A model generated the notes under the pieces. The model ran no database searches, was not told where the DNA came from, and was given only the letters and a program-made list of their open reading frames with translations. DNA of 64,000 nt. It comes from Hyphochytrium catenoides (taxonomy: Eukaryota; Protista; Hyphochytriomycota). This document shows positions 6,515 to 32,961 of the stretch, one piece after another. Position numbers and translations under genes: made by a program. Every line of letters begins with the position of its first letter. The stretch's first letter is position 1. Location of the stretch: the NCBI GenBank assembly GCA_900088475.1, contig FLMG01000116.1, forward strand, positions 11,302 through 75,301, written 5' to 3'.

Positions 6515-8269
6515 ATGAATTTTGGCTTCGGTCGTGCAAAGGAGCCGTCCCAAGCTCCTACTGGCGGGTCCGATGCTGCTCCGCCTCCTCCTCCGCCACC
6601 GCCTGAGAAAAAGAGCGGCGGCTCACCATGGCACAATTTTGACCCTTCTGGTCTGGAGCGGGCAGCCAAAGCAGCCAGAGAGCTCGACCAGTCTCGCAAC
6701 GCTAAGGCTGCTGCGGATATTGCCTTAGAACAGGAGCGGTCCAAGCAGATTGAGTACCAAGCGAAAGTGAAGGAACAGGAAGCTGCTTACGAAGCTTACA
6801 AAGCACAGAGGGTGCAGAAAGAATATGAGGAAAAGCGAAAGACTATAGATTATGAGACGCAGCAGCACCAGCAGCGCGCTCGTTACCAAGATGAACTCAA
6901 GCGCAAGCAATATGCTGACCAGCTAGCAGCGCAAAAATACATGAAGGAGCAGGAACTGAAGAAGCAGGAAGAGATGATCGCCAGACAAGAAGCCCTCCGA
7001 CGCAAGACTTTGGATCATGAAGCTGAGCTCAGGCAGCGTACTGAGATGGCCAGAGTTGCAGCCGAGACAGAGGGTCGCATCAAACAGGAACGGATGAACC
7101 ACGATCTTCACCTTGAGCAAGCCCGTCTGAGAGCTAAGGAACAGCGTGAGACCGTGCTCGAGTCCATCAGACTCATGGGTCAAACGGTAGGCAAAGGCGT
7201 TGATGAATTTTTAGGTGATAGTCAGAAGATGACTTCCGCGGTTGCGACTGTCACCTTTGTTGCCCTCGGTATTTATGCTGCCAAAGTGGGAACGAACGTG
7301 ACCGGTCGGTACATTGAAGCTCGTCTAGGGAAGCCGTCTCTGGTGAGGGAGACTTCCCGCCGCAATATGCTCCAGACTCTTGGCAACCCAGTCCCAGCCA
7401 TCAAGCGGATGTTTGCGAAGGCTGATGATGCCCTGCAGGGCGTAGTGTTGGCTTCAGACATCAACCATAAGCTCCAAGTTATTGCTCGTTCAACATTCAA
7501 TACCAAGAAGAACCGGGCACCGTTCAGAAACGTTCTATTTTATGGTCCTCCTGGTACCGGAAAAACACTTTTCGCCAAGCGTCTGGCGAAGCACTCAGGC
7601 CTAGAGTACGCTGTACTTACCGGTGGAGATGTGGCGCCACTGGGCAGACAAGGCGTCACAGAGATCCATAAGCTCTTCGACTGGGCGGAGTCTAGTCGTC
7701 GTGGCCTCCTACTGTTTGTAGATGAGGCTGATGCATTTCTGCAAAAGAGAAGCAATCAGACCATGAGCGAGGACCTGCGAAACGCTCTCAACGCTTTTCT
7801 TTTCCGGACAGGAGAAGCAAGCAACAAATTTATGGTTGTCTTCGCGACAAATGAGCCTGAGCAGTTTGACTGGGCCATCAATGATAGAATTGACGAGATG
7901 GTTGCATTCAGAGTCCCAGGTCTTGATGAAAGAATCCGGATGCTCGGCATGTACTTCGAGAAGTATGTTCTAACGCCACCTACTAGGTGGTCTAAGAAGA
8001 TTATAGTTGATTCAGAGATCAACATGGAGAAGTTGCAAACTGTGGCGGAGAAGCTTGAAGGGTTTTCTGGTAGAGAGATCTCCAAGCTAGCTATTGCCCT
8101 GCAGGCTGAGGCCTACGGTTCTAGTGACGCAAGACTGACTGAGGAGATGCTGGACTCTGTCGTGGCAGATCATATGCGTCAGCACGAACAGAAGCAGATC
8201 TGGTACAAGGCTGACCATGTGGGTCACGAACACATGCACAAGCCTGATGCCATGAAACTCGTCACCTAA
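6515..8269 (+). CDS. ATAD3: ATPase family AAA domain-containing protein 3 (single coding exon, 584 aa)
   Basis: Pro-rich N-terminus, FDPSGLERAAKAAREL, coiled coil, TM segment, RLGKPSLVRETSR, Walker A GPPGTGKT, Walker B LLFVDEADAFL, DWAINDRIDEMV, GFSGREISKL. Confidence 0.96.
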   Translation: MNFGFGRAKEPSQAPTGGSDAAPPPPPPPPEKKSGGSPWHNFDPSGLERAAKAARELDQSRNAKAAADIALEQERSKQIEYQAKVKEQEAAYEAYKAQRVQKEYEEKRKTIDYETQQHQQRARYQDELKRKQYADQLAAQKYMKEQELKKQEEMIARQEALRRKTLDHEAELRQRTEMARVAAETEGRIKQERMNHDLHLEQARLRAKEQRETVLESIRLMGQTVGKGVDEFLGDSQKMTSAVATVTFVALGIYAAKVGTNVTGRYIEARLGKPSLVRETSRRNMLQTLGNPVPAIKRMFAKADDALQGVVLASDINHKLQVIARSTFNTKKNRAPFRNVLFYGPPGTGKTLFAKRLAKHSGLEYAVLTGGDVAPLGRQGVTEIHKLFDWAESSRRGLLLFVDEADAFLQKRSNQTMSEDLRNALNAFLFRTGEASNKFMVVFATNEPEQFDWAINDRIDEMVAFRVPGLDERIRMLGMYFEKYVLTPPTRWSKKIIVDSEINMEKLQTVAEKLEGFSGREISKLAIALQAEAYGSSDARLTEEMLDSVVADHMRQHEQKQIWYKADHVGHEHMHKPDAMKLVT

Positions 8270-15350: not shown

Positions 15351-18300
15351 ATGGTCTTCGAGGCTGCACTGGTTGCCGCGTTGCGGCGGTTCTTGGGCTC
15401 AGTAGTTGACATTGACCTGCAGCAGCTCCAGCTTTCTTTATGGACCGGTAGATATGTTCATTCCTTATGTCTTCTTTCCTCTCTGTTAGCGCCTTCTGTC
15501 TTCCCGGAACGTTATACAACCAACCTTCGTTCTAGCTTATGCCTGCCCGACTAGATACCTTTATTCTTTCGCTTGTGGCTCTTCCACCTCATCACCCTCT
15601 CTTCTTTATTCAGGAGACCTAGCGCTGGAGAACGTGGTCCTGAAAGGGGATCTGTTGGCAAAGTTTCCAATCCCTCTGTCTTTCCTTCAAGGTAGTACGA
15701 GATGAGTTTACTCTTCTCTATTAATCCAACATGCTCTATGGTTGTTGCGGGAGCTCTATTTAGCTCTCCGTCCAAACATTTGCTTCCGACCTGCCACTTA
15801 AGGAGGAAGTTTGTCTGCTCTGTGGGTCCCACGGTCTAAAGTATCGGCGTTCCAAAAAGCTTGCTCCGGAGATGAAAGCCATCTGCGTCTCCATCCCACT
15901 GTCAAATTTACTGCTAATAGCTCTGCACTTCTTCTGCGGTCTTTTCTCTGGGTGTCCGCTTCTCCTCCTTTACTTACACTCTGCCCTTGCTATAGACTTC
16001 CTGCTAGTATTCGCGTTCGTCATCGGACATCACCTTTTTTCGACTAAGATTTTCCTTTGTAGGCTCTATAGGGCATCTTCGTCTTGAGATCCCATGGCTC
16101 TCACTCTGGAAGAGTCCTGTCGTTATCACTGCTGAGAAAGTTAGAATAGAGCTGGAGACATCGGCCTCTTCCACTCGCACGTCGCCCGTGCCCCCAAGCC
16201 CTGCAAAAGTAAGAGTACTCTTTCAGCTAAAGTGACATGTACAAGGAAGGGTAGAAAGTGTAGGGGTTAGCGCGCTAGAGTGGATCTTCTTACAGCAGCC
16301 TGAAATCAACAAACACAATATTCACTAGGGGTCGAAGCTACCGGGAGAGGATGATACTATGCCTGGAGGTTAGTCTCTAACACTTGTATGTGCGCGTTAG
16401 GTTACTCTTTCCGTCGCTTTATTTGGCTATCCTTTCTCTATCTTCGCCTCTGAACATTGACGTTCCTCGTAAGAGTTGCACTTCTATCGTAAGCTTCTTA
16501 TAAAGTCAGTTTATTAATCCGTCGAACTTCCTTCCATCGCCAGCTCCGCCTGGCTATCTCAACCGCCTGATTAGACATGTTATCGAAAACATCAGGTTGG
16601 AGGTGAAAGATGTGTCTATCAGTCTCTTTCAAGGCGGGTTATTGGTGACCGAAGAGGTAACGTTCGACAGCTATTCGCCTCTTGTCTCCCTCTGTAAATC
16701 ATAGACTTACGTTCAACTATTGCTTCTTTGTTTATATGCTTCTTCCTTTTTATGCGACGTCAATGTTCTAACTGGATGGCTTGCAGGTTAGCGGTCTGGC
16801 TTTAGTATGGGACTCGTTACGCGTCTATAAAACTGAGGACGGCATTCAATCAAAAAAGGTGGGTTGGCTTCCTCCTCTCTTTTTTGAGTGCCTTTATTGA
16901 TAAAAAGTGCCTGGGTTCTTCTTGATTTGTTCTCCAGATAGCTTCGGTACGAGATATTGGTCTCGTCTGGAGACAACCAGAAGCTAGTGATGCTGGGACA
17001 GACTTTATACTTTATCCTACCACCATTCTTTTAGAGGTAAGGACGGCTTGAGGGTAGAAGAAATAAGTTGATGAAAATATCTGAGAGACAAACCCATGCT
17101 TGGAGTATCAGCGGACCTAGGAATGAGTAACTTACTGGTTCGCCGCAGAACCTCGACGTGCTGGTTATGCTTAGGTGTGGTCGGAAGAGGCTGGTAGATG
17201 GTGAAGATAGTCCTAAACGACAGTGAGGCAGGGTATCGCGTCACTCTCTGCTGCCTTAACTCTTCAGTCTTCCTTTACCTTTAGAGCACAACCAACAAGA
17301 AAGAAGACCTTGAGGGAGGAGACCAGACCCAAATGAGAAACATTACTATGTCAGTCAATGCAGAAGAAAAGCTAAGTTCCAAACCAATGCGAGCGAAAGT
17401 CAGCGAAGAGCAGCTTCTAGACCTGGCAAACCTCGTGGAGGAGCTTTGTAGCAGTTTGCGCCAAGAAGATGATGGAGAGGAAGAGGAAAGTGAGGAGGCG
17501 ACTTTTTCCCCACCAAGGCCTCGGAGTGTCCTTGAAGAGTCTTGGCTCCAGCTGGACCTATGGACTCACTTCTTCTCCTCTATTGGCGCTCCTAGTCCTA
17601 ATAATAAAGGACGGGAGGACATAGCCTCTCAGGTCTCGAATGATGCATTGAATGGAGAAGGCCTTGACGAAGGCGATCTGGCTATTGAGACTAGCTTCAA
17701 AACTAGGGATCTGGAGTTCTGTCTGTCCATTGTTTGCGGACTTGAGCTGTCTCTTTCTTGTGGTACATTGCGCTGCAAGGAGGGCGACCAAATGCCGGAC
17801 GAGGAAATGAAGAAGAGCTGCAGAAAACTTAACAAAGAGCGAATACTGCTTGCTAAATTTGGATCCTTCCACCTTTCCTACCTGGATTCCTCTCTGCTTT
17901 CATCGTTCTCGATGAGCATTATGTCTCTCTCTGTTACTGAAGACGGATCGCGTCCTTTATTCCACACGAGGAGTGAGGAGTTTGAGGCAGTCATGGCCCT
18001 GTTTTGGGAAACGCCCAAGCCTCTCTCGCCTCATAGAAGAGAAGCTTCAGCAAGCCTCTATCTAGGACCAAAGTACAAGGCATCGTTGTCTGCTTTCACA
18101 ATGACTATTGATCCTCTTGTCCTGGAAGTACTCTCTCTGCTGTGTGACATTTCCCTTAGAGTAATGGCACCTTCTCCTCAACCATCGTTACGACAGCCAT
18201 CTTTTTCCTCTACACCGTCTCAGTCTTCCTTGTCGCCTATTTCTTCCCTGGGATCTCTGGAAATTTCTCTGGGAGATATGACCTTCTATTTTCCTGTTAG

Positions 18301-21300
18301 TGTATCAGAAGCCAACACAACCAGATACGCCATATCCCTCGAGGAGATCCGAGTAATTTCGGACAAAGAGTGTCAAAATGGAGTTGAAGCAGAGGAAAAA
18401 CTCGAGGGGCAAGGGAGCATACGAGGGCTTCAGATCAAGATTGCGTCCTGCAGCGTCTTCCACCAGAAGTGGAGCTCAGAGCGACGCACCTGGGAGGCAA
18501 AAACCAGTCTCATAACAGGCCTGTCGCCCTTGGTCCTGACACTGAGAGAGAACCTCACAGGCCCTCATTCCCCGTCACCAAACTCTTCTCCTTCTCCTTC
18601 TGAGACGGACGGGGTCTGTCAGCATGTCTTTGGATCAAGCTCTTCTTCACTACCTTCCTTGGCTACAGAGGAGCAGCAAAGAATCAATCTCACGGCTCCA
18701 GAGGTCTTTGCAGTATCTCTCTCCGTCATGCTCTCAGACGTGACTCTTCATTGCACGGATGAGCAGTTATGGCAAATATCTTGGCTGATAGGCTCTTTTG
18801 TCGCTTTCCTTCCAACAAAGGGCCTAAAGCGGAAAGGAGGGCCAAAACAGCCGAAGGGTCTGGATATATGTCAGACATACGGGACTTGCTTCGACCTCTG
18901 CAAAAAAGAAGTAATTTGCGCTGTGTCTCACCTTAAAGTGCACCTCTCTGTATCTGAGACCTTCGCTTGGGCGGAGGATGTATGCGCTTATAAGCTCTCT
19001 TCCTTACCTACACATCACTCTTCCTCCGTCAGCTTCATTTCGCCCCTTCAATATGAGCTTGAGCTTGGAGGACTGCAATGGCGAGGAACCGATTGCTCTC
19101 ATGTTCAGGAAACAGAGGTGAAAATAGATTTTTTAAGCTTGTGTGCTAAGAAAGAGGCATCATCTGGAGGTATGGCTAAGCCGGGGCTAAAGAGAGAGGG
19201 AGGGAGAGTGTCGAACACTGATATTGATGAGAAATCTCACACTGGTCAAGGCCGAAATGTTGCCGGGCGATGTCTGCTGTCGTTGGGCTCCCTATCAGGT
19301 CCTGGTCTTCGCGTTCGAGGCTCAAAGTATCCGCGAAGGACTTTCAGTCAAGAACAGGGTCTAACGGTTGCTGTCGGTACAGTCTTTGATTCCCAGGTGA
19401 ATCTGGGCGATCTGAGAGTTGGATTGGAGCCAGAGGTCACTTTTAACCTTTGCAAAATTGTTGCAAGATCGTTGAGCCTAGCAGAGCTCAGCACAAAGGT
19501 CAGAGTCAGGAGAAGCGAGAAAGCCCGATCCACGAGGAAGAGAAAAGTGAAACATCTCAGTAGTCAGTCTTCGGCAGGCGAAAGGTTCACATGTGAGCGA
19601 AACCCCTCGAGAGTTTCCGCATCCCTCTCTGTGGTCTGCTCCTCGACTGACATCCGGGCACTGGTAGGCGAGCGACAGCTATGCGCAGTCACTGGAAGTA
19701 GGCTTAGCGGCACTCTTCTCGTTTATGATGGGATCAGCTGTTGTTCAGGCTGTGTTGCTTTCGAAGGGCGAGGGAGCTGGGAGGAGATTGAGTTGGTAGA
19801 CCTTTCCGGCGTCAATGAGTTACATCGCAACATCATCTCCTGGAGGGGAGCCGCCAGAGAGGAGGACAAGCACTATCCGATGCCATCCATAGACTTCTCC
19901 ATTTCTTCTTTCTGCTCTCATGCATCCGACTTTCCCGGGTATTCTCCTCTGATCTGTGTTCGGGCGGGTAACTTCTCCCACAAGGTTCTGTACCGCTTCT
20001 ATCGGGAAATAGGGAACTTTGTAGGGTTGAGATTGCTGCCAACCGTCCTCTGCTTTGGTCAAACAGATGGAGAGGAGGAGAGAGTTTTGAGAACCATATT
20101 AGAGAAGCTTGGAGCTTGCGACCTGGTACTTAGAGGCTGGCCAGAGGGCTTATCTATGGAGAAGGGCCCATCAGGCAGGACGATCTGCAATACTGAATCT
20201 CTTCTCACATCGCAGCCTTCCCCCAAAATTGATCTTCTCTTCCACGACGTTCTAGTGTATCTTGTCGAGGGGTCCAGAGCCCCAGACTCTCTCATATTCT
20301 CCATCCAGAGGCTTGAGGCTTGGACTTGTGGAGCATTTGGAGATACAAAGTCAAAGTTTCTTCTTCAGGGACATTTCCCTGACGAAGATCTAGATATTTT
20401 TCAGGAGCCAGACAATAATCCTGACGACTTCAGATATTACCTTCAGAAGATTAAAGAAGGCTATCGGCGAGAAAGAAGGGTCCGGATGCAAAGAAGGTTC
20501 GAGCTATCAACCCTCCTCGCAGACTTGCTGGCATCAAACAAGAGGACAGAGATCGAAGGGGAGCAAGAGACCGAAGAGCAAGACGGAGAGGCCTTAGCTC
20601 AAGACAGCACAGGAAGATGCGACTTGGATCAGCAGATATGTGCGCTCGAAGAAGCTCTAGAGAATCTGAATCTGGAAATCAAAAGTCTAACGGAACAAAT
20701 AAATGCGGACGGAGAAAACCATGATTCTTCCCTTCTATCGCCTCAACTCCTCGACCCAAAGCGAGACGTCTTCATTGAGGAAGAGGAGGATGACAACGAT
20801 GAAGGCTTCTACGATGCTGACGATGAGGAGCAAGGTCCGGCAAATCTAAGGAAAGAGGAAAACAGGATGGAGTTTCTAGCATCGCGCGTAGAAATATTAT
20901 CTGCCGCATCCTCTTCGGTTATTTCTCAGCTATCTTGTATAGCCGGGTGGGTGCATTTTGCACAAACCCTCCGGCAGCCAGACCAGGAGGAGTCGATGTC
21001 TTCTTTCTCTTCCAATGCATGCAAGCAGGGCATACACTCTCCAATTCTGCACACAGGCCGAGAGGAGAGCATCTCCTGCTTGTCGTCCCCAGCGATAATG
21101 TCCAGGACATCCTCACCCGGCTTGACAGATCTTGAACTTTCGTCTTCTTCCTTCTCATCCCCGAGGTCCTTTGGGAGAAGGGCAACCTCTTCCTCTTGTC
21201 CTCGCCAGGGACCATTGTCCCAGTTTCCGTCCAACAAAAAGAGTACCCCGCTGATTCTCTCTTTTAGCGTCGGCCACTTTCCCCTGTGTCTTACACCTCA

Positions 21301-24300
21301 ACAGTTGGAGACTCTCTTGGGCTTCATCATGAGGAACTTAAAGGAGTTCCCACATCTATGTCCTGATCCTCCCTTATCTCTCCTTTTCTGCACCCTTTGC
21401 AAGGGGCACCACTACGCTCACCAAGATTGCAATGCTCCATGGTTCCTTCTTTCTCTCTATTTTCCGTCTGCTACACTAAGTCTCGTAGAAGAGTACCCAG
21501 GTAGGGAAGCTCAGGACGGGGAAAACAAAGCAGGTGAAGGCATGAGCGGGCCCTTCCCGCCGTTTGGGGAGCTGCAGTTCGAGCAGTTGGAGATTTTAGT
21601 GCAGCAGAACAGCAACGATGTCGCCCAGTTAGCTGTGTCTGCAAATTACGTACGGGTACAGAGTCGAGCCCTAAACGTCCCACAAGGCGATACGAGTATT
21701 GCTGATTGGAGAGAAGTCTTTTCTCCTCTTACGTCAAACCGGAGACAGTTGTTCTATCGGCAACTCTCGTCATGGACCTCATGTTCCCACTCAATTCATG
21801 TCAATGACTCTTGCGTCAGCATCCTCCCGCCGCTTATGGTCCCTCTATCTCTCTTCTTTACAATCGCTCTAAAAAATGTTCTAGACAAAGCGAGAGAGGA
21901 ACAAGGGCCGTATGTCGTTCCTGCTACGCTTTTCAAAGACAAGGAGACAGAGAGGACCAGGAACAACCAGACTCATGACGAAGGGGGCTCTAGCGTAAGA
22001 GGCTGGCCAAACTTCGATCTAACCTTGGACTTATTCATAGACAACACGCTCTTCTGCTTGTATCAAGATCCTCAAGGAACCTCCTCGAGGTAAATGAGAG
22101 GGGCGTTAGAGGCATAGTGACCGTTTGATCGGAGTAGGCCGACAAGAGACACCAGGAGAGAATCATCACCGATACACCCGGACTGGGTCTGAGTGATAAC
22201 TCAGTTACAAAGCAATAGCTTGAGGCGGTCAAGACGTAGAGATTGTATCATATGCTCGCCCTAACCTCTTTTTTCGGCTGCTGTCTCTTTGATCCCCTAA
22301 GGGTACTTTGTATCCTTTCTTGCTTAGACTTACAGCAGCAATGGCTGGATGAGGTGAAGCAAAGCAACCACTTTGCCATCAAACAGAAGAAGATATTTTT
22401 CTCTTCTTTCCCAGATCTGCAGGTAACTCGGGTCACTACTTTTCCTGCCTATATGACCTCCGTGTTGCCGCTTCGGTATGGTATGGCCCTAAATTCGTTG
22501 TCTGGCGGGTGACGTCGAGCTCTCACACTCTTCAACTTTTCTTCTACACCCTCTTTGACTTTTCTTCTAACACACCTTCTTTGTAGATCGAGCAGTCAGT
22601 CGCATTAGCAAATGAGTTCTCCATCGCCTGCGACTATGAAATTAATGTCAGCCGAAAGGACGGCCTCGCAAGTGAGGGCATGAACGAGAAGGAAGGAGAG
22701 GCTCAAATGGTGGCCATTGAGAAGTTTTCCTTCCTTCTCCACCCACTGAAGCTGGCTCTGTCTTACCGCGACTGTCTGCAATTGGTAGATATCCTTGATT
22801 CCGTAAACTTATCTCTGTCGCTTGTGACACAAGACACAGATGAAAAAATCCAGAGAGGCGCCGCCGATCCTTCTCCCCTTCCTTGTCAAGAGGACCCTAC
22901 AGATATCAGCATTATGCAGCAGCAGACCTTGGGGCAGGTTGGTGACATCCGCCTGATACTGCTGGAGGACGAAAGAGATGTTCCTCTGTTAGAGCTCTTT
23001 GTAGAGAGTATAGGGATAGAAAGCGGCAGTTGTGGAGGAAACACTGCCCTTTCCCTTGATGCATCAGCCTCACTCTCTGCCTTTAACTCACGGAATAATG
23101 GCTGGGAGCCGCTGCTCGAGAAGACGGCCTTCCAGCTTAGGTTGGCTGCTAGCAACAGGGCAGAAGATCCAGTTCAACTTGTTCTCTCTGTTCCCTCGGT
23201 TATGAACCTCAACCTCACACAAACATGGGCCGACACTCTCCCTCGCCTCCTATCAAATCTGAGGTCCGACGAATCAATTATTTCTCCGTCTCTTTCCAGC
23301 GGTGTCCATATCGAGAACTCAACAGGCCTTCCCATAGAGTTTTGCCTGAGGCAGGGAATTCGTGACGTAATCCGCGGGAGATTGGAACACGATCAAAGTG
23401 CTGACGCGATCTTGCGTGGCCAGGAAGAGGATTTAAAAAGGAAGAGGAGATCGGCCGCCATTGACTCTCTTTTACCTTCAGCACCTCTATTCCAGCAAGA
23501 GGCGGCTGCTTCTAAGCAGACCCTTGCCATTTGGCTTAACGACCGAGAGTGGGGAACAGCTTCTCCTGTTGCTATCAGCAACACTGGCAAATATGTCTTA
23601 CCTGTCCGGCGAGCAAAAGTGAGACGGCAAGACGACCTCCAAGAGGTGGCTCAGGGAAGGAGTCTTAACCTCTTTCCCGGCACGTTAGTGCTGGATATCA
23701 GCCTCAATCAGGGTGACGGGACTAAGGTCCTGAAGATACTGTCTCCTCTAGTCATTTCTAATCAGACAGACATTCCCCTGCAGCTTTGGGCTTACTCACC
23801 GCAAGGGGGAGGGCGCGTCGAAGAGTGGACGGTGGATGCAGGCGAGTCTTCCACAGCCCCTCTTTCTGTCCTCCACGTAGAAAACAAGGTCAGCATCAGA
23901 CCCACAAACTCCACTGACTGGGGACCCTTACTCAGCAGCTTGAGCCAGTTGCGGGGCGAGAAGATACCTGGTAGCCGTTATCAAACGGTAGCAGTCTGCC
24001 CCGTAGCCGCAGGGAGGGAAGAGGATAAAGCAAGAAATAACACAGAGGAGGAAAGGCAGTTCATTTGTTCAGCTCTCCCTTCCTGGTGCTGTGTAGCTGT
24101 GGCTGTCGAAAGCGCGCTGGAAGAGGTCCCGATAGCTGATGGTCGTCTAACCTCGAAGATAGCTTTGACTTCCATGGATGGAAGGGACGGTACTGCCAAG
24201 AGGGACAGAACGCCTAAAATAAGGCAAAAGCAGAAGGAAAGCAAGATCGTATCAAAAACGAGTCTTACATCAGTTTTCTCCACCAGTCGCCCATCTCTCT

Positions 24301-27300
24301 TTACATTGGTCCTTCTACCTCCCGTTCAACTCATCAATGCTCTTCCCTTCGTTGTCAGTTACCGATTCTGCTGCCATGAGAGGCATCTGCTCCTGGCGGA
24401 AGGAATAGTGGACGTAGGGAAAACGTTGCAATTGTGTCAAGTTGAGATGGGAACTGTTCTTTCACTTTCCATATCTCTTCCTGGTTATGACTGGAGCGAG
24501 TTTACTCCCATTACCTCTCCTGCACGACTACATGGGTTCCCAGACTCAGTAGGCAAAAGTAGGGATCTCGAAGACCGGAAAGCCTATAAGATTACTCTTA
24601 GAAGGCGCGTAGAGAGCCATTTAGACGGGAGCGTAAGAGAGGATGAGCTGTCTCTCCTTCTCAAGAGAGAAGGAAGGCTTCTTCGTCTAGTTGCCCCGAT
24701 CTGGCTTGTCAATCGAACCTCTCTCCCTGTTGAGTTCAAATCAGGATCGCAGATTACTCCTATGACTCCTTCTAGAAGAGCTTCCAGACGCGTACTCGAG
24801 AGAGAAAGGTCAGACAGGAACCGGAATGGAAGACAAAAATTGTCGGCTGCACTTGTTTCCAAGGGCAGTATGAAGCGCGTTTCTGATCAGGCCCCTTCTA
24901 TTCTCATGGTCGTGGTGGAGCAAGCAGAGTACTTGCCTGATATGGCGCTGGTAGGGCGACAGGACCCCTTTGTTCGAGTTTCTCTCTTCTTACCCGCTTT
25001 CCGTCCCTCCAAAGTTCAATCTGCCCTGGAAAAGGGGATGAGACCCCGAATTCTCTATAAGGCTGAGACCCGTCCCTGTGTCGCAGGGGGTTCTAGGCCT
25101 CGGTGGGGGCCTCAGCATAACTGCAGCCTCCTCATACCTCTCTCTGGAGAGCGCGATGTCGTGAACCAGGGTAAACTTCTGGTGGAGGTTCTCCATCGAA
25201 CAATCGTGGGAGAAGAGCTGCTAGGATGGTTGCAGCTAAGTTTGGCACAGATAGGAAGTTCTACGGGCGACATGGACCAACCCCACTGGTACTCTTTGTC
25301 TCCCTCTCCTGCTCATCAAAATAGGGGAACAACGGCAAGAATTGTCCTTTCTATCCACATCAGCTCTAGTCAGCGGCCTCCGATCAATACGAGTGAGGGG
25401 AAAATAGGGCCAGGAAGTAGCATCTCTCTCTCAGAAAGAGTAGGGGCGGATGGAGGTAGCATGCAAGACGAAGGGAAAGAAGCAGCTATGCCATCCTCCG
25501 CAGAAGCGACAAGACATCGGATCTCCCTATACCTGGCTCATCATATACAGAATCGTCCACCTAGGAACATCCTTATCTCCAGAGGCATCCTCACACCTCT
25601 TTTGTCGCCCACGATAGCTAAGCGGAGCGCTTTCCTTGCCGCCAAACTAGATTTGCGACCAAGCAAGAGGAACCTTGAGGAGAGAGGCATTCTTGTCAGG
25701 AGTCGACCGCTCATCTTCCTCCGCATCTATTTGCCTCATAACCGCTTTCATTATGTCTCTCTGTTTCTACCAGAGGATACCGTTCTTGCCGAGGCAGTTG
25801 AGCGGGCGCTGATGGTCTGTGGCCTGAGTTTCAGTAGGCCCGACCTCTATGTCTGCTTTGAAATCACCACAAAAAGTTGGCCTCTTTCCCGAGACCCCAC
25901 AAAACAAACACAGCTGACAGCCATGGTTGCCCAATTCACCGCTTTGGAACCTGCTGTTCCAGTGTCCGAGGATCATCTTCCGGCCATGCGGTGCGTGGGT
26001 AGGGAGTATGAACTGACGTTGCCTTTAGCAATGTGTAATGTGGAGAACGGGCTGCTGTTAATGCATAAGGCGGGTATTGGGCCTTTGCTTAATCGCTCTT
26101 CATCCACAGCTCTTGCCTTGCCAATGTCATGTCCCCTCATGCTGGAGCAAGATACAGACAGTAGCGAGAACTTTGCAGTGAAGGAGGTAGTCCTCTTCCC
26201 TCTTGGCAATGAGGAAGAAAATAAGGCCAGGCTATCTGTCCGCCTTCCAGATACGCCATGGAGCCGCCCATTTCCTCTACTCTCGGAAGCAGGGGTGCTC
26301 ACTCTCTCGCAGAGACCAATACCAGCAGGTATGGAGGTTGTCCAGCGTACAGAAGAACTGCAGCCAAGCCTCAGAAAGTACCAGTTCGGCGTCCAAACAA
26401 CAGAGGGAGAGGGCATATTCTCAGACTCTCTAATAGTGTCCTTTATGCCCCGCTACCTTCTTCGCAATAACACGTCGCAGGAGATACGTCTACGGCAGTA
26501 TGGATCTCGACTCATTTCCTTCATGAAGCCCGGCCAGGCCCAACCATTCCATTGGGACGACAGGACAAAGGAGGTAAGGAAAGGAGTACGTGATAAGTAA
26601 TTCCTGCAACAGTGGCAAACGTTGAGTCCTTGAGTGCTCAGTCGATCTTGTGAAACTCTTTGGGGGGCATCCGCCACAAATGGCGTTCGTGGCTCAACCT
26701 GCTCTCCTTAAACGATCGACTTGCATGTCCTCGTCCTGACTGACAACTGGTTGCCCAGGAGTCGCTTTCAGTTACTGTAGGCAAGAAAGTCTGGCAGTGG
26801 AGCGGGCACTTTTCCCTTGATGGTGTGGGCAGTATATTCCTCCTTTTGAGACCGGTGCATCCCACGGCCCCTACCTCTGCACCGGGGTCGTTCAGCCTTC
26901 TACTTCAAGTGAGAAGAGAGGTAGCTGGGAGCTGTCTCCTCGTCTCTTTCGAGCTCGGGGATGTACGCTTTCCACCATATCGCATAGATAACAAGACGTC
27001 ATATCATCTCAAGTATAAGCAATCCAGGTGAGCGGGCTTGGGAGCTGCCGATTTAAACTCCGCAGCTGCTCCAATTACTGATGAATGGCGCTACGCCTCC
27101 CATCAAACAGTCTTGTCTCTAGCATCCACAGCCCATCACTACCCCTCGGCTACCGATTAGTTCCGGTTCAGCTCCTTCTTCATACCAAAAAGCATTCTCT
27201 AAGACTCTTAACTCACCTAACCTCCCTCGTTCCCCTTCTGAATCTTTCCGCCGCTGGTATTCACCGTCGCTGAAGCTCTTCTCCGGATGATACTGGACCG

Positions 27301-30300
27301 TGGGATGACTTGGGTCCTAAAAGGTGAGCTACTGTGCCCTACTAAACCATGAGAGATGGAACGACGCAAAGCATAGAAGATCTTTAGCTTACATGACAAG
27401 ACCAGGGGAAGAAGGAACGGGAGACGGGCAACAAAATTAGGTTTAGACTTTGGACCAAATATAGTCAACTATGAAGGAGGGTGATGGCATTACGTAGAAC
27501 CAGTTTATGGCACCATGATCGACGGAGGCCACTTAGTTGACTGTGTTGCCTACGTCTGCCTAGATCAAAGCCATATGCTTGGGAGCATCCCAACAGCGTG
27601 AATCGAAGCCTCTGCATTCGTTTCTTACAGGTGAAGGAGTGCTGTCGACCTCTTAATCGCCCGTTGAATTTTCCTCAATCCGATCTTATCTGGCTCCTCT
27701 TGCTCTTCGAAGCCCCACCTTTACGTTTGACGTGAAAGTAACGTTTTAGGTCTTTCTAAACGTACCAATGAGACCCCCTATGGTGAATGTCCTTCCTATT
27801 CAGCCGAAATCCTCCCCGTAGGTTGCGGATGCGGGTCTGGAGAGCTACCAGTCCTATAATTTTAGCTTAGATGAGGTCGTCGAGCATAAGGTAAGAGAAA
27901 GGCTAAGCTTCACTTCCAGATGACCTAAGAGTTACTTTTCTGTGTTGTGCTCTGTCCCTCCAAGCCATCTCGCCATTTCAAGATACTGCCTGGCCTTGCG
28001 ATGCAGCAAAGAGATCTAAACCAAGTGCTTTCAGCCTCCTCCTGCGAACAGCCGGCTCTCTCTTAGCCACCTTTTCCCTAAACTTCGCTAACTAGCTACT
28101 CACCTTCTAATCGAATCCGCTCATCACCTCCCTCTTTCAGACCTTCAAACTTCAACGAAGTCTTCCCTCATTCAAAAACCTTACAAAAGAGGGCTTTCTT
28201 CTAAAAAAAGACGAGTCGCTCTCCTCCATTTCGCGCTGGCAGCGGCGCTACTTCCGTCTCCAAGGAATAAGCCTATACTACTTTAAGAGCAAGGAGGACT
28301 GGGAGCTGAGGGGAGTGATCGATCTTGTGACGGAGGAAATGGGGGGTAGTTTCATAGCTGTCTACATGTTGCCTCCCTCCCCTAAGAGGAGAGCTCGAAG
28401 CTTCTTCCCTGGCCCCGCGCCCTACTCACTCAAGGGTCGGCTGCAAGGCTTAAGGAATATCGTCGGAGACGAGCGGGTGGGAAACGTAATGGCAGCTCGA
28501 GAGCGCAGCGAAGCGGGAGCCGAGCCTAAAGCCTCCTTAAATTACCTACATGGCTTGCAACATGCGGCCGAAATTCTTCGCAGCTCTTATTTGGAGGTCC
28601 TCCGCGAACGAAACGCGGAGATGTCTACCAGGAGGGTGAGGGAAGGAGATAAAGAGAAGACGGTGGAAGGACAGGTCTCCCCGCATGTGGTAATGGAAGG
28701 TTCAGAGATCGTCCGTCTTCTCCTTGCTAAAAGGATTGCACCAGCGAGATCCTATGCGATAGACATGGCCAGAGATCTTCTGGAGTGTGGCCTACTGGAA
28801 GAAAGAGGCGGAAAAGCAAAGGATAGAGATCTGACGGTGGAGGAGGAGGACAACAACTTTAGAGAAGGCGGGGCCTACGAAGTGCTTCCGAGCATTGTGG
28901 CGCAGGATCTGCCTACTTTCTCCAGTCATTCAAGGGCTAAGGGATTGTCAAATCGCTTCTGTATAGTGACATCAATCAAGACTTCCTATTTTACATGTCG
29001 TGACTACGAGGAGGCTCTTAGTTGGGTACAGGCCATCCAGAGAGCCTCCCATGCAGAAGCCCAAGAGGTACACTTCTTACCTTGAATAGCACTAACGCTA
29101 TCTCTGGCTCAGGAGAGGAATTCCTTCTTTATTTCTCCGACTCCCTAATGTACTCTGCCTGGTTCTACTGCGCTGGCCATCGTGAGAATACTTTCAAAAG
29201 TCTCACTGGGCCTTGTTCCTCGTTCTACCGTTAGAATGTGAATACGTCCAAGTCGATCGTTGGGGATACGCTTCACGACCGAGTCCGCACCAAGTCCTTC
29301 ATTCGGGCGAGAATCAGAGCTGATGGACCCACCAAGGTTCTCGAGCTCAATGAGGTCGGACTAGACGATGCTGCTGAACAAGAGTCTGTGGACGGCAGAG
29401 GAGAAGCAGATGAGCATGAAGAAGCCACGATAGGCTCAGAAACAGCTACGTCACGATCAGTGGGAGGTTCTCCTTTCTTCTTCCCTCGAGGGACTATTCA
29501 CATACTCTTGCAGCTCGACTCCTTTGGAATATCCATTGTTGACCAAAGGCCCGAGGAGCTTCTTTATATGAGCCTTCATAACATTCGAGCGCTGGCCTCC
29601 GTTTCAGCAGCGAGGGCAAGTGTCACTCTGTCAGTGAACAAATTGCAGATCGACAATCAGTCGAGAAGCGCAATATACCCAGTAATCCTCTACGTGGATA
29701 GTGAGCCACAGAGGAGGAGAAGAAGTGGCCTAAAAGGAGAAGACGGAGATCGGGCGGCTGGGACTTTCGGGTTCTCCTGTGCTGACTGTGAGATGTGGAG
29801 CGAGCAAGAAACGTCTTTTCACCTCTGCTTCTCGTTGCTGCGTGGAAGGAAGGATCTATTATACTTTGAGCACTTGTCTTCCTGGTTGGCTCCTCTGCAG
29901 TTGTGCTTGGAGGAAGACGCTATGGCGACTTTGCAGCAATTCTTCGCCTCGGTAGGCAACCACTCCGGTCTATACTCCCATCTTCCCGTCATCCGTGCAA
30001 TTAGCATTCTCTTGCCTCTTCAAATCTATGTTAAACCAATAACTATTTTCCTGCACGTTGTGCTGCTTGCACACCTGTGTTCGACTTCTTTGTCGCCATA
30101 GGATTCATGTTGCTACACGATATCTTTGTAACGTAAGGTCTACAATGTCTAGAGGACTCTTGCTCAGTAGACTCTCCACATGTTATATCGTCAATCATTC
30201 TCTAGGGGAATTATTCCAGAGCTTCGAAGTCCCTTACAAGTGACCACCCAGAGTGTGATGACGAGCCCGGAAGAGGACAAGGCCTGCGACGAGGAACGTT

Positions 30301-32961
30301 AAGCAATGAAAGAAGGTCAAGGGCAGCATCACTGGATGCGGACATATTGAAGGATTATCTAGCGACGATGCAAGAAAATGTCTTCCTTGGCATAGACAAC
30401 CGTTTTCGATCAATTGGTCCATATCAAGCAGAGACGTGGACATCATACTTCTCCTTCCTCCATCTTCACCCCGTGTCCCTCTCACTAACGTACAGAAGCA
30501 GCAGAGGGAGTTATCTTATGGGCCGGGAGGGCGTTGGGGATGAGCTCATTGAGAGGAGGCGAAGGCTAGGCGGAAGAATGTTTCGCCTGCCTGCCCTTGA
30601 TGACGCTTCCATACAGTTTGGTACTTTAGTGCTAGAGCATGGCTTTGGGACGTTGCAGGACACGCTCCAAAGCGTCTGCCGCCACTATACTGGTCAAGCG
30701 CTGCGGCAAGTTCATAAGGTCATCGGATCAATGGACTTTTTAGGCAATCCTGTCAACTTCTTCGGGCATATGGGCGCTGGAGTAAGTACATGTACTGGCT
30801 CTCCTCTGCTTCAGCCACTGGCAGTCTTGACTTTAAGTTCTATCGTCTTCAAACCTTCGACTGCGTACATTGTGGCATCATAGACCCGCCGCCGTACCGT
30901 CAGTCCCCCAGCACCTCTCTTCCATGACAGGGTGTTTCATTCTCCTCATGGGTCAAGGCCCTTTGATTGTTATAAGCGCTTCTCTATTGTCAACCTAATA
31001 GGACCACTCTTCCGTCAGGCTTCACCTAACTCGATGACTCTCTGCAATCTATATTGTTATAGGTACGCGATTTTATTCAGGAGCCTCTTGATGGCCTCAA
31101 AAGTGGCGGAATAGGATTCGGGCAGGGGTTAGCTAAAGGCACTGCGAGCCTAGTTCAGAATACGGTGGATGGCACATTGGATGCTGCCTCCAAGATCTAT
31201 GGCAGTTTAGGCCAGGGGTTAGCCTCTCTTCTCGATGATCACTACCAAGCGAGGAGACAGCAAGAAAGAATGGAGCCAGTTGGCAGTCTGGGAGAAGGGC
31301 TTAAACAAGGCGCAAAGGAACTACGTCTTGGGCTAGTAGAAGGATTCTCGGGCATGTTTCTTGCGCCTATCAGGGGAAGTCAGGAGGGTGCGATGGGGCT
31401 GATGAGAGGAGCAGTGCAGGGAGTGCTTGGAGTGGCCCTCAAACCGACCGCAGGCGTCTTTGACTTCGCCTCTCGCGCCTCTCAGGGCCTCAAGTATCGG
31501 CCACAATTACAATTGCAGGGCCATCTAGGAAAAGAAAGGGTTCGTCCCCCTAGGGTCTTCGGGCGCCATGGACAGCTTAAGGAGTTTCGCGAGGAAGATA
31601 CCGTGGCTTTTGCTCTTCTACGGGAGGTCCTCGGTGGAAGGTTTAGTCGCTCCTACATCGTGTTCCATTCGCAAATTGTCCAAACGCTACCGATGGTGGA
31701 AGTCGCTGCTCGGGAAAGGAGGGCTGCAAAGGAACGGGATCAGGGCGGATACCAAGGAGGAGATCTTTATCAAGTTACCTTTCATCCTGGCCCTATCGGT
31801 CTTCAGTTGGAGACCGACTTCTACCAGCAACACATTGTAGTAAAAGGCTTTAATCGCAGTAAGGACGGCTCTTATGGTCAGGCTGAGCTCTCTACTCTTA
31901 TAGAGACTGGGAACATTCTACTCAGTGTTGGAGGTATTGCGGTTCAAGACATGCGATTTTCTTCCGTGATGTCGCTGATCAAAGGGGCTGCAAGGCCAGT
32001 AACCCTGACATTTGAGAAGCCAACTCGGCCAGGTCGAAGAAAGGGAAGAGCACGCACGGTCTTTTCGTTAGGAGCCGTGGAGAGCGGTCAAGTCCAGTCC
32101 GGGGGGGAAGAGCCATGTTCTGCCAGGAACCCAACACTGGAACCTTCAGCACTAGTTCATTTGACCCACTGGCTGATTGTCACTGATACCCATGCTCTGC
32201 TCATCAACATTAGTGACGTTAGCCAGGTCTGTGTTGACTGGATAACACCCTTACAGAATGTCATTGATGTCTCGTGCGATCAAGAGGTTGAAGCGTTGGA
32301 TGTGAGGGTACGTGTACCGTTAACTGCGGGATCCAGTGGACCAATGGTTCGGCCCTCGTCTGAAGCTATGGCTATTAGAGACAGGAATCTGCATCTTTTC
32401 CAGGTCGCTATGTGGCAGGCCTTCCAGTCGAAAGCAGCCGCTGCGCAAGAGTTCTACCCGTCTGAGGCGATCATTCAAGGGCCGCTGCGGAAGAAGACTG
32501 GGCTACGGCTGTTGAAACGCTGGTTCGTGGTTAGTAAAGGCTGTCTGTACTACTTCACCGATCCTGACCAGAAGAACTTAAGAGGTATAGTTCCACTAGC
32601 ATACCTAGAAGTGACTCCAGACCGAGTGAGCACAGAGGGCTTCTCTCTACATCCGCGGGGTGATTATCCGCTCAAGGTGGTCCATATAGAGGATAGAGAG
32701 GCAGTTGTGCAAACCTTCAAGGGCATTAAGCTTTATGCCGACGACAGCGACCAGCGAGATCGATGGGTAAGCGTTCTGCGGTCAGTCTCTCTTATGCACG
32801 AGGCTTCGGGCCAAGAGGGAGGCAGTACGGACAGTAGTAGCCAAAGCTCCACCCTTCTACGCGTTGGAGTAAGAGGCGTGCCATCATCACAAGTTGAGTC
32901 TCTGATCCTGAACTTCAAGCAGTGTCTGACCTCATGTGAGCTAGCACGCTCTCTCATCTGA
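15351..32961 (+). CDS. VPS13: VPS13-family bridge-like lipid transfer protein, ~4,600-4,700 aa, multi-exon, with inserted C2, 2xRPEL, ubiquitin-like, split PH/DEP, PDZ and PH modules
   Basis: Chorein-N start MVFEAALVAALRRFLG..DIDLQQLQLSLWTG-DLALENVVLK...GSIGHLRLEIPW; FNSRNNGWEPLLE; VAB repeats (IENSTG, ISNQT, LINALP, WLVNRTSLP, PRYLLRNNT, WSGHF, PPYRIDNKT); GPTKVL, GISIVD..PEELLY, LQIDNQ; GSMDFLGNPV; ATG2_C-like Gly-rich helices (KPTAGVFD); RVRPPR. Confidence 0.93.

Follow-up and report, generated by a model that had tools for sequence, protein, structure and literature searches.

We describe here a gene of the VPS13 family from Hyphochytrium catenoides, whose fourth VAB repeat carries an insert composed of a C2 domain, two RPEL motifs and a second module that is probably a beta-grasp fold. 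The gene lies on the plus strand of contig FLMG01000116.1 (assembly GCA_900088475.1), within the 64,000-nucleotide stretch of DNA that was analyzed and to which we refer as the window. The explanation that accounts best for the data, and to which we give somewhat better than even confidence, is that an old cassette made of the C2 and beta-grasp modules has received a lineage-specific pair of RPEL motifs, which would make this lipid bridge responsive to actin. All searches were performed exon by exon, no spliced protein being used, and the genome examined comprised 61 Mb in 4759 contigs. The RPEL region consists of three features:

25338-25532, plus strand: linker rich in Ser, Gly and Glu, disordered (predicted local distance difference test, pLDDT, of 25-35; no secondary structure)
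25533-25598, plus strand: RPEL motif 1, LAHHIQNRPPRNILISRGILTP (27.3 bits, E 2.7e-6; invariant Arg at 25554-25556)
25635-25694, plus strand: RPEL motif 2, LAAKLDLRPSKRNLEERGIL (17.1 bits, E 0.0044 alone; invariant Arg at 25656-25658)

The two motifs had been pointed out in an earlier note on this DNA and proved to be real. Pfam profile PF02755 (curated cut-off of 23 bits), run on positions 25440-25720, matched the pair in two stretches with a joint score of 38.4 bits (E 8.9e-10), motif 1 exceeded the cut-off by itself, and the best solved-structure matches of the cassette were the Phactr1 RPEL peptides 4b1z and 4b1w together with MRTF 2yjf. A similarity due to chance was rejected on the basis of the E value of the pair and of that obtained for the site when all six frames of the genome were scanned (8.9e-4). 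The arginines of the two motifs are 34 residues apart; motif 1 begins about 65 residues past the C2 domain, and motif 2 ends 5-8 residues ahead of the first strand of the second module.

Motif 1 aligned to the Phactr1 RPEL in 4b1z, and the best structure match of motif 2 was the Phactr1 peptide 4b1w (RPSKRELEEKNIL). The cores, RPPRNIL in motif 1 and RPSKRNL in motif 2, retained the Arg, Pro and Leu of the consensus RPxxxEL, and in the alignments to the Phactr1 peptides the Arg-Pro pair was kept in both motifs, as were the contact positions in helix 1 (Leu at -7, Ile/Leu at -3), the Leu at +6 and the Ile-Leu at +11/+12. Previous work on MAL has shown that RPEL2 contacts actin through a Leu and an Ile of helix 1, a Lys, the main chain at +3, the Leu at +6 and a hydrophobic cap, that the invariant Arg stacks on actin Tyr169 and pairs with the C-terminal carboxylate, and that the Pro shapes the loop (PMC2583105). 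Position +3 is occupied by Arg in motif 1 and by Lys in motif 2, and not by Pro as in MAL RPEL3, which this Pro weakens (PMC2583105). Judged from these alignments, both motifs retain all the positions through which MRTF and Phactr1 are known to contact actin, and we predict, at a little over an even chance, that the pair binds monomeric actin (G-actin).

A second RPEL gene was detected in the same genome (L001; G000:C2945:9056-12118, minus strand). One of its motifs passes the Pfam cut-off (24 bits); three or four further RPEL-like repeats, weaker in score, occupy consecutive exons, and a Ser/Pro-rich N-terminus precedes them. Because this gene also bears RPEL, actin sensing of the RPEL type is plausible in this organism. 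The top Pfam Actin matches that were inspected (L014, L017 and L018) were Arp-like, multi-exon genes, and no conventional actin stood out among the Pfam Actin matches, where it may be split among exons, masked, or missing from the assembly.

The host gene and the remaining parts of the insert and its surroundings are as follows:

15351-32961 (approximate), plus strand: whole VPS13-family gene, exons read from genomic DNA and junctions predicted
22587-26573, plus strand: long exon with VAB repeats 1-4, the head of repeat 5 and the insert (1329 codons, stop-free frame)
24705-24767, plus strand: head of VAB repeat 4, LVNRTSLPVEFKSGS (end of VAB profile positions 174-326; repeat-start motif and spacing)
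24768-24899, plus strand: basic lead-in to the insert, probably disordered (no family match; poorly conserved in the alignment)
24900-25337, plus strand: C2 domain, probably not Ca2+-binding (Pfam 20.8 bits; synaptotagmin matches; language-model features)
25701-26144, plus strand: conserved module, probably beta-grasp (RA/FERM-F1-like), with a conserved tail (invariant columns; language-model features; low-confidence model)
26202-26459, plus strand: rest of VAB repeat 4 (VAB profile positions 345-453)
26460-26573, plus strand: head of VAB repeat 5 (LRNNTSQEIRL), which resumes at 26759 past a 185-nucleotide intron

In the earlier note, the cassette was placed between VAB repeats. Instead, the Pfam VAB profile, whose pieces together span positions 55-532, is broken inside repeat 4: profile positions 174-326 stop at 24767 and positions 345-453 restart at 26202. 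The six N-x-T heads of the VAB repeats were found at 23310, 23754, 24330, 24705, 26460 and 26984, and the spacing between repeat starts was 148, 192, 125 and then 585 residues. Because of this profile break and the 585-residue spacing, the insert, of about 478 residues, was assigned to repeat 4, directly after the first strands of the repeat (LVNRTSLPVEF, 24705). The head of the repeat, LVNRTSLPVEFKSGS, aligned with WIVNHSDLDLEY of the oomycete orthologues described below. Translating the open frame 22680-26600 yields every peptide that the earlier note quoted. As for the content of the cassette, the C2 domain and both RPEL motifs stood, and the ubiquitin- or RA-like stretch, which has no Pfam match, could be kept only tentatively.

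The identification of the host as VPS13 was well founded, with domain matches running from VPS13_N to VPS13_C and the PH domain. Exons 1-3 consecutively matched positions 1-33, 33-60 and 58-93 of the Pfam VPS13_N profile with 12-25 bits each, these scores being weak because the exons are short. The exon at 22587-26573 matched VAB with 116.7 bits as well as the end of VPS13_M, and the last exon matched VPS13_C with 27.8 bits (cut-off 21) and a C-terminal PH domain with 39.4 bits. Since VPS13_N, the end of VPS13_M, VAB and VPS13_C plus PH were matched along the exons, the gene at 15351-32961 is read as a complete though divergent member of the family. No Pfam match at E ≤ 1 was obtained for the 1586-residue open reading frame at 17333-22090, which lies within a 1602-codon open frame (17285-22090), and the lipid groove of this paralogue is predicted to be either very divergent or interrupted.

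The borders of the long exon are an acceptor ...TTTGTAG| at 22586 and a donor |GTAAGG at 26574, with GT-AG introns on both sides; in the upstream intron, the evident donor GT at 22090 and the acceptor AG at 22586 are out of phase. By codon score, the exon frame ranked first in all sub-segments of 22587-26573 except the linker at 25339-25514, where two other frames outscored it. A constitutive intron in the insert was rejected on the basis of the open frame and the codon scores, and no tandem repeats were found in the insert region, so that a tandem-repeat artefact was rejected as well.

Other features of this gene and its family were also observed. Within the exon at 17285-22090 there is an acidic stretch that resembles a coiled coil. 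A PH domain (55.4 bits) at 28111-29082 is split in two halves (residues 25-73 and 285-312), between which there is a weak DEP-like match (E 0.009); two oomycete orthologues (P0015 and P0016) have a precomputed DEP match (PF00610), and the split PH/DEP arrangement looks conserved too. In the last exon, the stretch between VPS13_C and PH (31762-32028, residues 234-322) gave a weak PDZ match (E 0.06) and has copies at at least seven other loci of the genome, 31-36% identical, as would be expected of a shared domain that has no name yet. VAB-bearing loci were detected at at least eight other places in the genome (contigs C3463, C2997, C2241, C3141, C3870, C929, C3571 and C1442), and the VPS13 family thus looks unusually large in this organism. 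A search of its own genome for a close VPS13 paralogue of the window gene found none, identity to the other loci being about 36% or less.

The C2 segment scored 20.8 bits with PF00168 (E 4.6e-4), narrowly below the 22-bit cut-off. Its best solved-structure matches were the C2A and C2B domains of synaptotagmin, and its language-model features fell in C2 clusters (0.95), with 85 of 100 matches being C2 domains. A multi-C2 protein was also the only domain-level match of the cassette in a search of 1.84 billion proteins. The canonical calcium-site pattern of C2 domains, in loops 1 and 3, was taken as the yardstick for the calcium gating proposed in the earlier note. That proposal was not supported: the acidic D-x-D pair sought in loop 3 was absent both in the window (VLHRTIVGEE) and in its relatives, and the oomycete orthologues have Ser or Asn in place of the loop-1 aspartate of DP[YF]V (QSPYV, QNPYV). 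A role of this C2 domain as a Ca2+ sensor was rejected on these two grounds.

The second module (25701-26144) is probably of the beta-grasp type. It has 22 invariant columns over 18 sequences, YLPxNRF included, and RA clusters were nearest by language-model features (0.92, with 175-182 features in common), other ubiquitin-like folds coming next. Single-sequence AlphaFold2 modelling of the module gave the order beta-beta-alpha-beta-alpha-beta with a pLDDT of 49, the value for the whole cassette modelled with AlphaFold from a single sequence being 38. A Pfam scan gave no match to this module in any of seven members, and neither a sequence search of the PDB nor Foldseek, run on the pLDDT-49 model, gave support. 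Profile comparisons with the PDB gave matches with E values of 0.4-1.3; the best ones obtained with a profile of the 18 sequences were a piece of the PLC-beta C2 domain (E 0.57) and the SNX27 F1 lobe (E 1.3), neither being significant. The weak alignment to SNX27 residues 10-62 runs through the first two strands, helix 1 and the third strand, in that order, as expected, and the C-terminal half of the module shows a faint likeness to a portion of the PLC-beta C2 domain (E 0.4-0.6). The gating by a small GTPase that had been suggested for this stretch rests on an RA-like resemblance with no significant match, and is not supported.

Relatives of the cassette were recovered through the last exon of the gene. 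A HMMER search with the 323-residue cassette against 1.84 billion representatives returned nothing beyond a fragment rich in repeats and a kinase-like protein with multiple C2 domains (E 6e-5 and 4e-4); a word search with the 1306-residue exon and a metagenome scan with 24900-26573 gave no match either. The lack of orthologues in the HMMER result reflects a limit of sensitivity, because identity to the oomycete orthologues is no more than about 24% in the modules. By contrast, the last exon used as query identified six orthologues in Logan assemblies (contigs L019-L024), with 35-37% identity over 98% of the query, so that the idea of a cassette without relatives was rejected. These genes are intron-poor, and their upstream open reading frame of about 2100-2200 residues bears VAB with an insert at the same repeat-4 site. 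A word search seeded from one of them (L019) led to named proteins of Nothophytophthora, several Phytophthora, Globisporangium, Peronospora, Pythium insidiosum, Thraustotheca and three Aphanomyces species (P0012-P0030), examples being Phytophthora fragariae PF005_g9408, Nothophytophthora BBJ28_00007604, Pythium insidiosum PINS_up000463 and proteins of Aphanomyces invadans and Thraustotheca clavata. Database entries for the oomycete orthologues call them nothing more than "hypothetical" or "C2 domain-containing".

All orthologues found belong to oomycetes (n = 18), and we aligned their inserts with that of the window, counting Pfam matches at E ≤ 1. VAB was matched in all 19 sequences, C2 in 14 and RPEL in one, that of the window. 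A C2-like segment and the second module were present at the same site of repeat 4 in each of the 18 oomycete orthologues. Among six close oomycete relatives, identity was 74-82% in the C2 domain, 72-73% in the second module and 34-44% in the linker. These data indicate that the cassette of C2 and second module is old and under purifying selection; since it is common to the oomycete orthologues, it was already present before this lineage and the oomycetes diverged. They also show that the cassette is not the single unit that the earlier note had described, its two folded modules recurring in the 18 orthologues and the RPEL pair being confined to this genome. The RPEL pair is best regarded as an addition specific to the lineage of the window, within a fast-evolving linker. 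Because RPEL is absent in both major oomycete branches and the linker is variable, the comparison of these two lineages favours a gain in this lineage over a loss on the oomycete stem.

How the pair might work is suggested by known RPEL proteins, in which G-actin and another ligand compete, the site of the latter overlapping the motif or lying directly beside it (PMC7599070). In the VPS13 of the window, the RPEL motifs would bind one or two actin monomers, and a 42-kDa monomer on either motif would crowd the C2 domain, the second module and the neighbouring VAB repeats. The bound G-actin would then compete with another ligand, as it does with importin in MRTF, with PP1 in Phactr and in ArhGAP12. 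The rival ligand would most likely be that of the adjacent beta-grasp module, that of the C2 domain, or that of a neighbouring adaptor site in VAB; the adaptor-binding site of yeast Vps13 consists of VAB repeats 5 and 6. Recruitment of the lipid bridge to its target membrane would in this way follow the balance between G-actin and filamentous actin (F-actin). Links with actin have been reported for VPS13A and yeast Vps13 (PMC5393151, PMC6361151). The most specific form of the proposal is that free actin monomers directly switch the recruitment of the bridge, RPEL-bound G-actin masking the RA-like or C2 targeting module in the VAB arm and lipid flow being turned on upon polymerisation; we put this forward tentatively and hold it to be rather unlikely.

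Several findings weigh against an actin-responsive bridge. None of the 18 oomycete orthologues examined has a Pfam RPEL match, and there is therefore no sign of selection on the motifs; in Saprolegniales, the linker is short (about 50 residues). Motif 2 alone, with 17.1 bits, falls under the Pfam cut-off of 23, and both motifs lack the consensus Glu, which is replaced by Ile in motif 1 and by Asn in motif 2; this Glu makes no contact with actin in MAL, and its exchange for Ala leaves affinity nearly the same (PMC2583105). The fold of the second module lacks a significant fold or profile match, its model being of low confidence. Finally, the exon itself and the retention of 25338-25700 in the mRNA are read from genomic DNA alone.

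Some of these points speak for a different explanation, in which the RPEL-like motifs are a recent neutral feature of a disordered linker, only the C2 and beta-grasp modules do work, and actin plays no part in regulating this VPS13. The occurrence of RPEL in a single one of the 19 orthologous inserts agrees with it, as do the position of the motifs in the least conserved part of the insert (the linker at 34-44% among close relatives, nearly gone in Saprolegniales), the sub-cut-off score of motif 2 alone and the missing Glu in both motifs. However, an adjacent pair at E 8.9e-10 with all contact positions in place is unlikely to arise and persist by drift, and a search of the organism's own genome found no paralogous copy of the cassette, and no donor copy that would mark a recent accidental insertion. 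We consider this explanation unlikely on balance, with appreciable weight all the same. Improbable, in our view, is that the motifs are functional but have a ligand that is not monomeric actin (an actin-related protein or a partner of the beta-grasp module, for example), or that they form a helical spacer that sets the distance from C2 to beta-grasp. The genome does encode many actin-related proteins, but the contact residues fit the cleft and ledge of actin, and to our knowledge all characterised RPEL motifs bind G-actin. The Glu of RPxxxEL that is replaced here is thought to serve a role apart from actin binding (PMC2583105), a point in favour of another ligand, whereas the RPEL motifs studied in PMC2583105 and PMC7599070 bind G-actin. 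It is very improbable that the segment is outside the mature protein as a result of alternative splicing or of an assembly artefact since, despite the reliance on genomic DNA for its retention in the mRNA, the open frame runs through 1329 codons, VAB repeat 4 is cleanly split around the insert, codon bias favours the exon frame except in the 25339-25514 linker, tandem repeats are absent, and the C2 and beta-grasp modules stand at the same site in intron-poor oomycete genes.

The statement in the earlier note that no RPEL-containing VPS13 had been characterised agreed with the literature, as no paper linking RPEL with VPS13 was present in the library searched, where the sole co-mention was an unrelated yeast study of alpha-synuclein and contact sites. 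The same library held no paper joining RPEL and oomycetes, and literature searches turned up no defined actin-binding motif in a VPS13. Proposed in the same note, the survey of VPS13 homologues for co-occurrence of these elements gave a divided answer: C2 and the second module recur in the 18 oomycete orthologues, and RPEL occurs in the window only.

VPS13 proteins carry bulk lipid between organelles, and what activates them at the proper contact site is still an open question. If the actin-responsive reading is true, a VPS13 with G-actin sensor motifs in its adaptor-binding arm would provide a simple and testable model for a coupling between actin and lipid transfer. The C2 and beta-grasp cassette within VAB repeat 4 of one VPS13 paralogue has been undescribed so far; it is common to oomycetes, which include major pathogens of plants and animals, and to this relative, and it extends the known list of VPS13 accessory domains.

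Elsewhere in the window, positions 6515-8266 hold a single-exon gene for a mitochondrial AAA ATPase of the ATAD3 type (ATAD3_N, 314.6 bits; AAA, 86.9 bits).

Accessory domains in VAB loops are already known, and the RPEL pair within a VPS13 is new relative to the literature searched. The first loop of VAB repeat 1 holds a C2 domain in plant VPS13M1 and VPS13M2, and a loop of VAB repeat 6 holds a ricin-type lectin in human VPS13D (PMC7613979). These proteins and the gene of the window share the setting of folded accessory domains into loops of VAB repeats; the insertion described here differs in being located in repeat 4 and in comprising two domains plus the RPEL motifs. With respect to the C2 insert of plant VPS13M1/M2, the likeness is one of layout. 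The closest counterparts are the oomycete orthologues, which represent the same VPS13 paralogue with C2-like and beta-grasp modules at the same repeat-4 site and a DEP/PH region downstream; they differ in having no RPEL and a linker that is either unrelated or very short. The second module resembles RA and FERM-F1 domains, such as afadin RA and the SNX27 F1 lobe, in its predicted beta-beta-alpha-beta order, RA being nearest by features, and differs from them in that no significant match in sequence, profile or fold was obtained.

With MRTF-A/MAL, Phactr1-4 and the ArhGAP12 family, the protein of the window shares tandem RPEL motifs, the Arg-Pro loop and the hydrophobic contact positions of helix 1 and helix 2. 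It differs in having only two motifs, spaced by 34 residues as against 38 in the aligned Phactr1 peptide, in the replacement of the consensus Glu by Ile and Asn, and in its occurrence in a stramenopile-type protist, with actin binding predicted from sequence alone. In all of these proteins RPEL adjoins another binding module, a layout that allows competition with importin, PP1 or GAP activity in the known cases; the host here is a lipid-transfer bridge, and not a transcription cofactor, a phosphatase cofactor or a RhoGAP.

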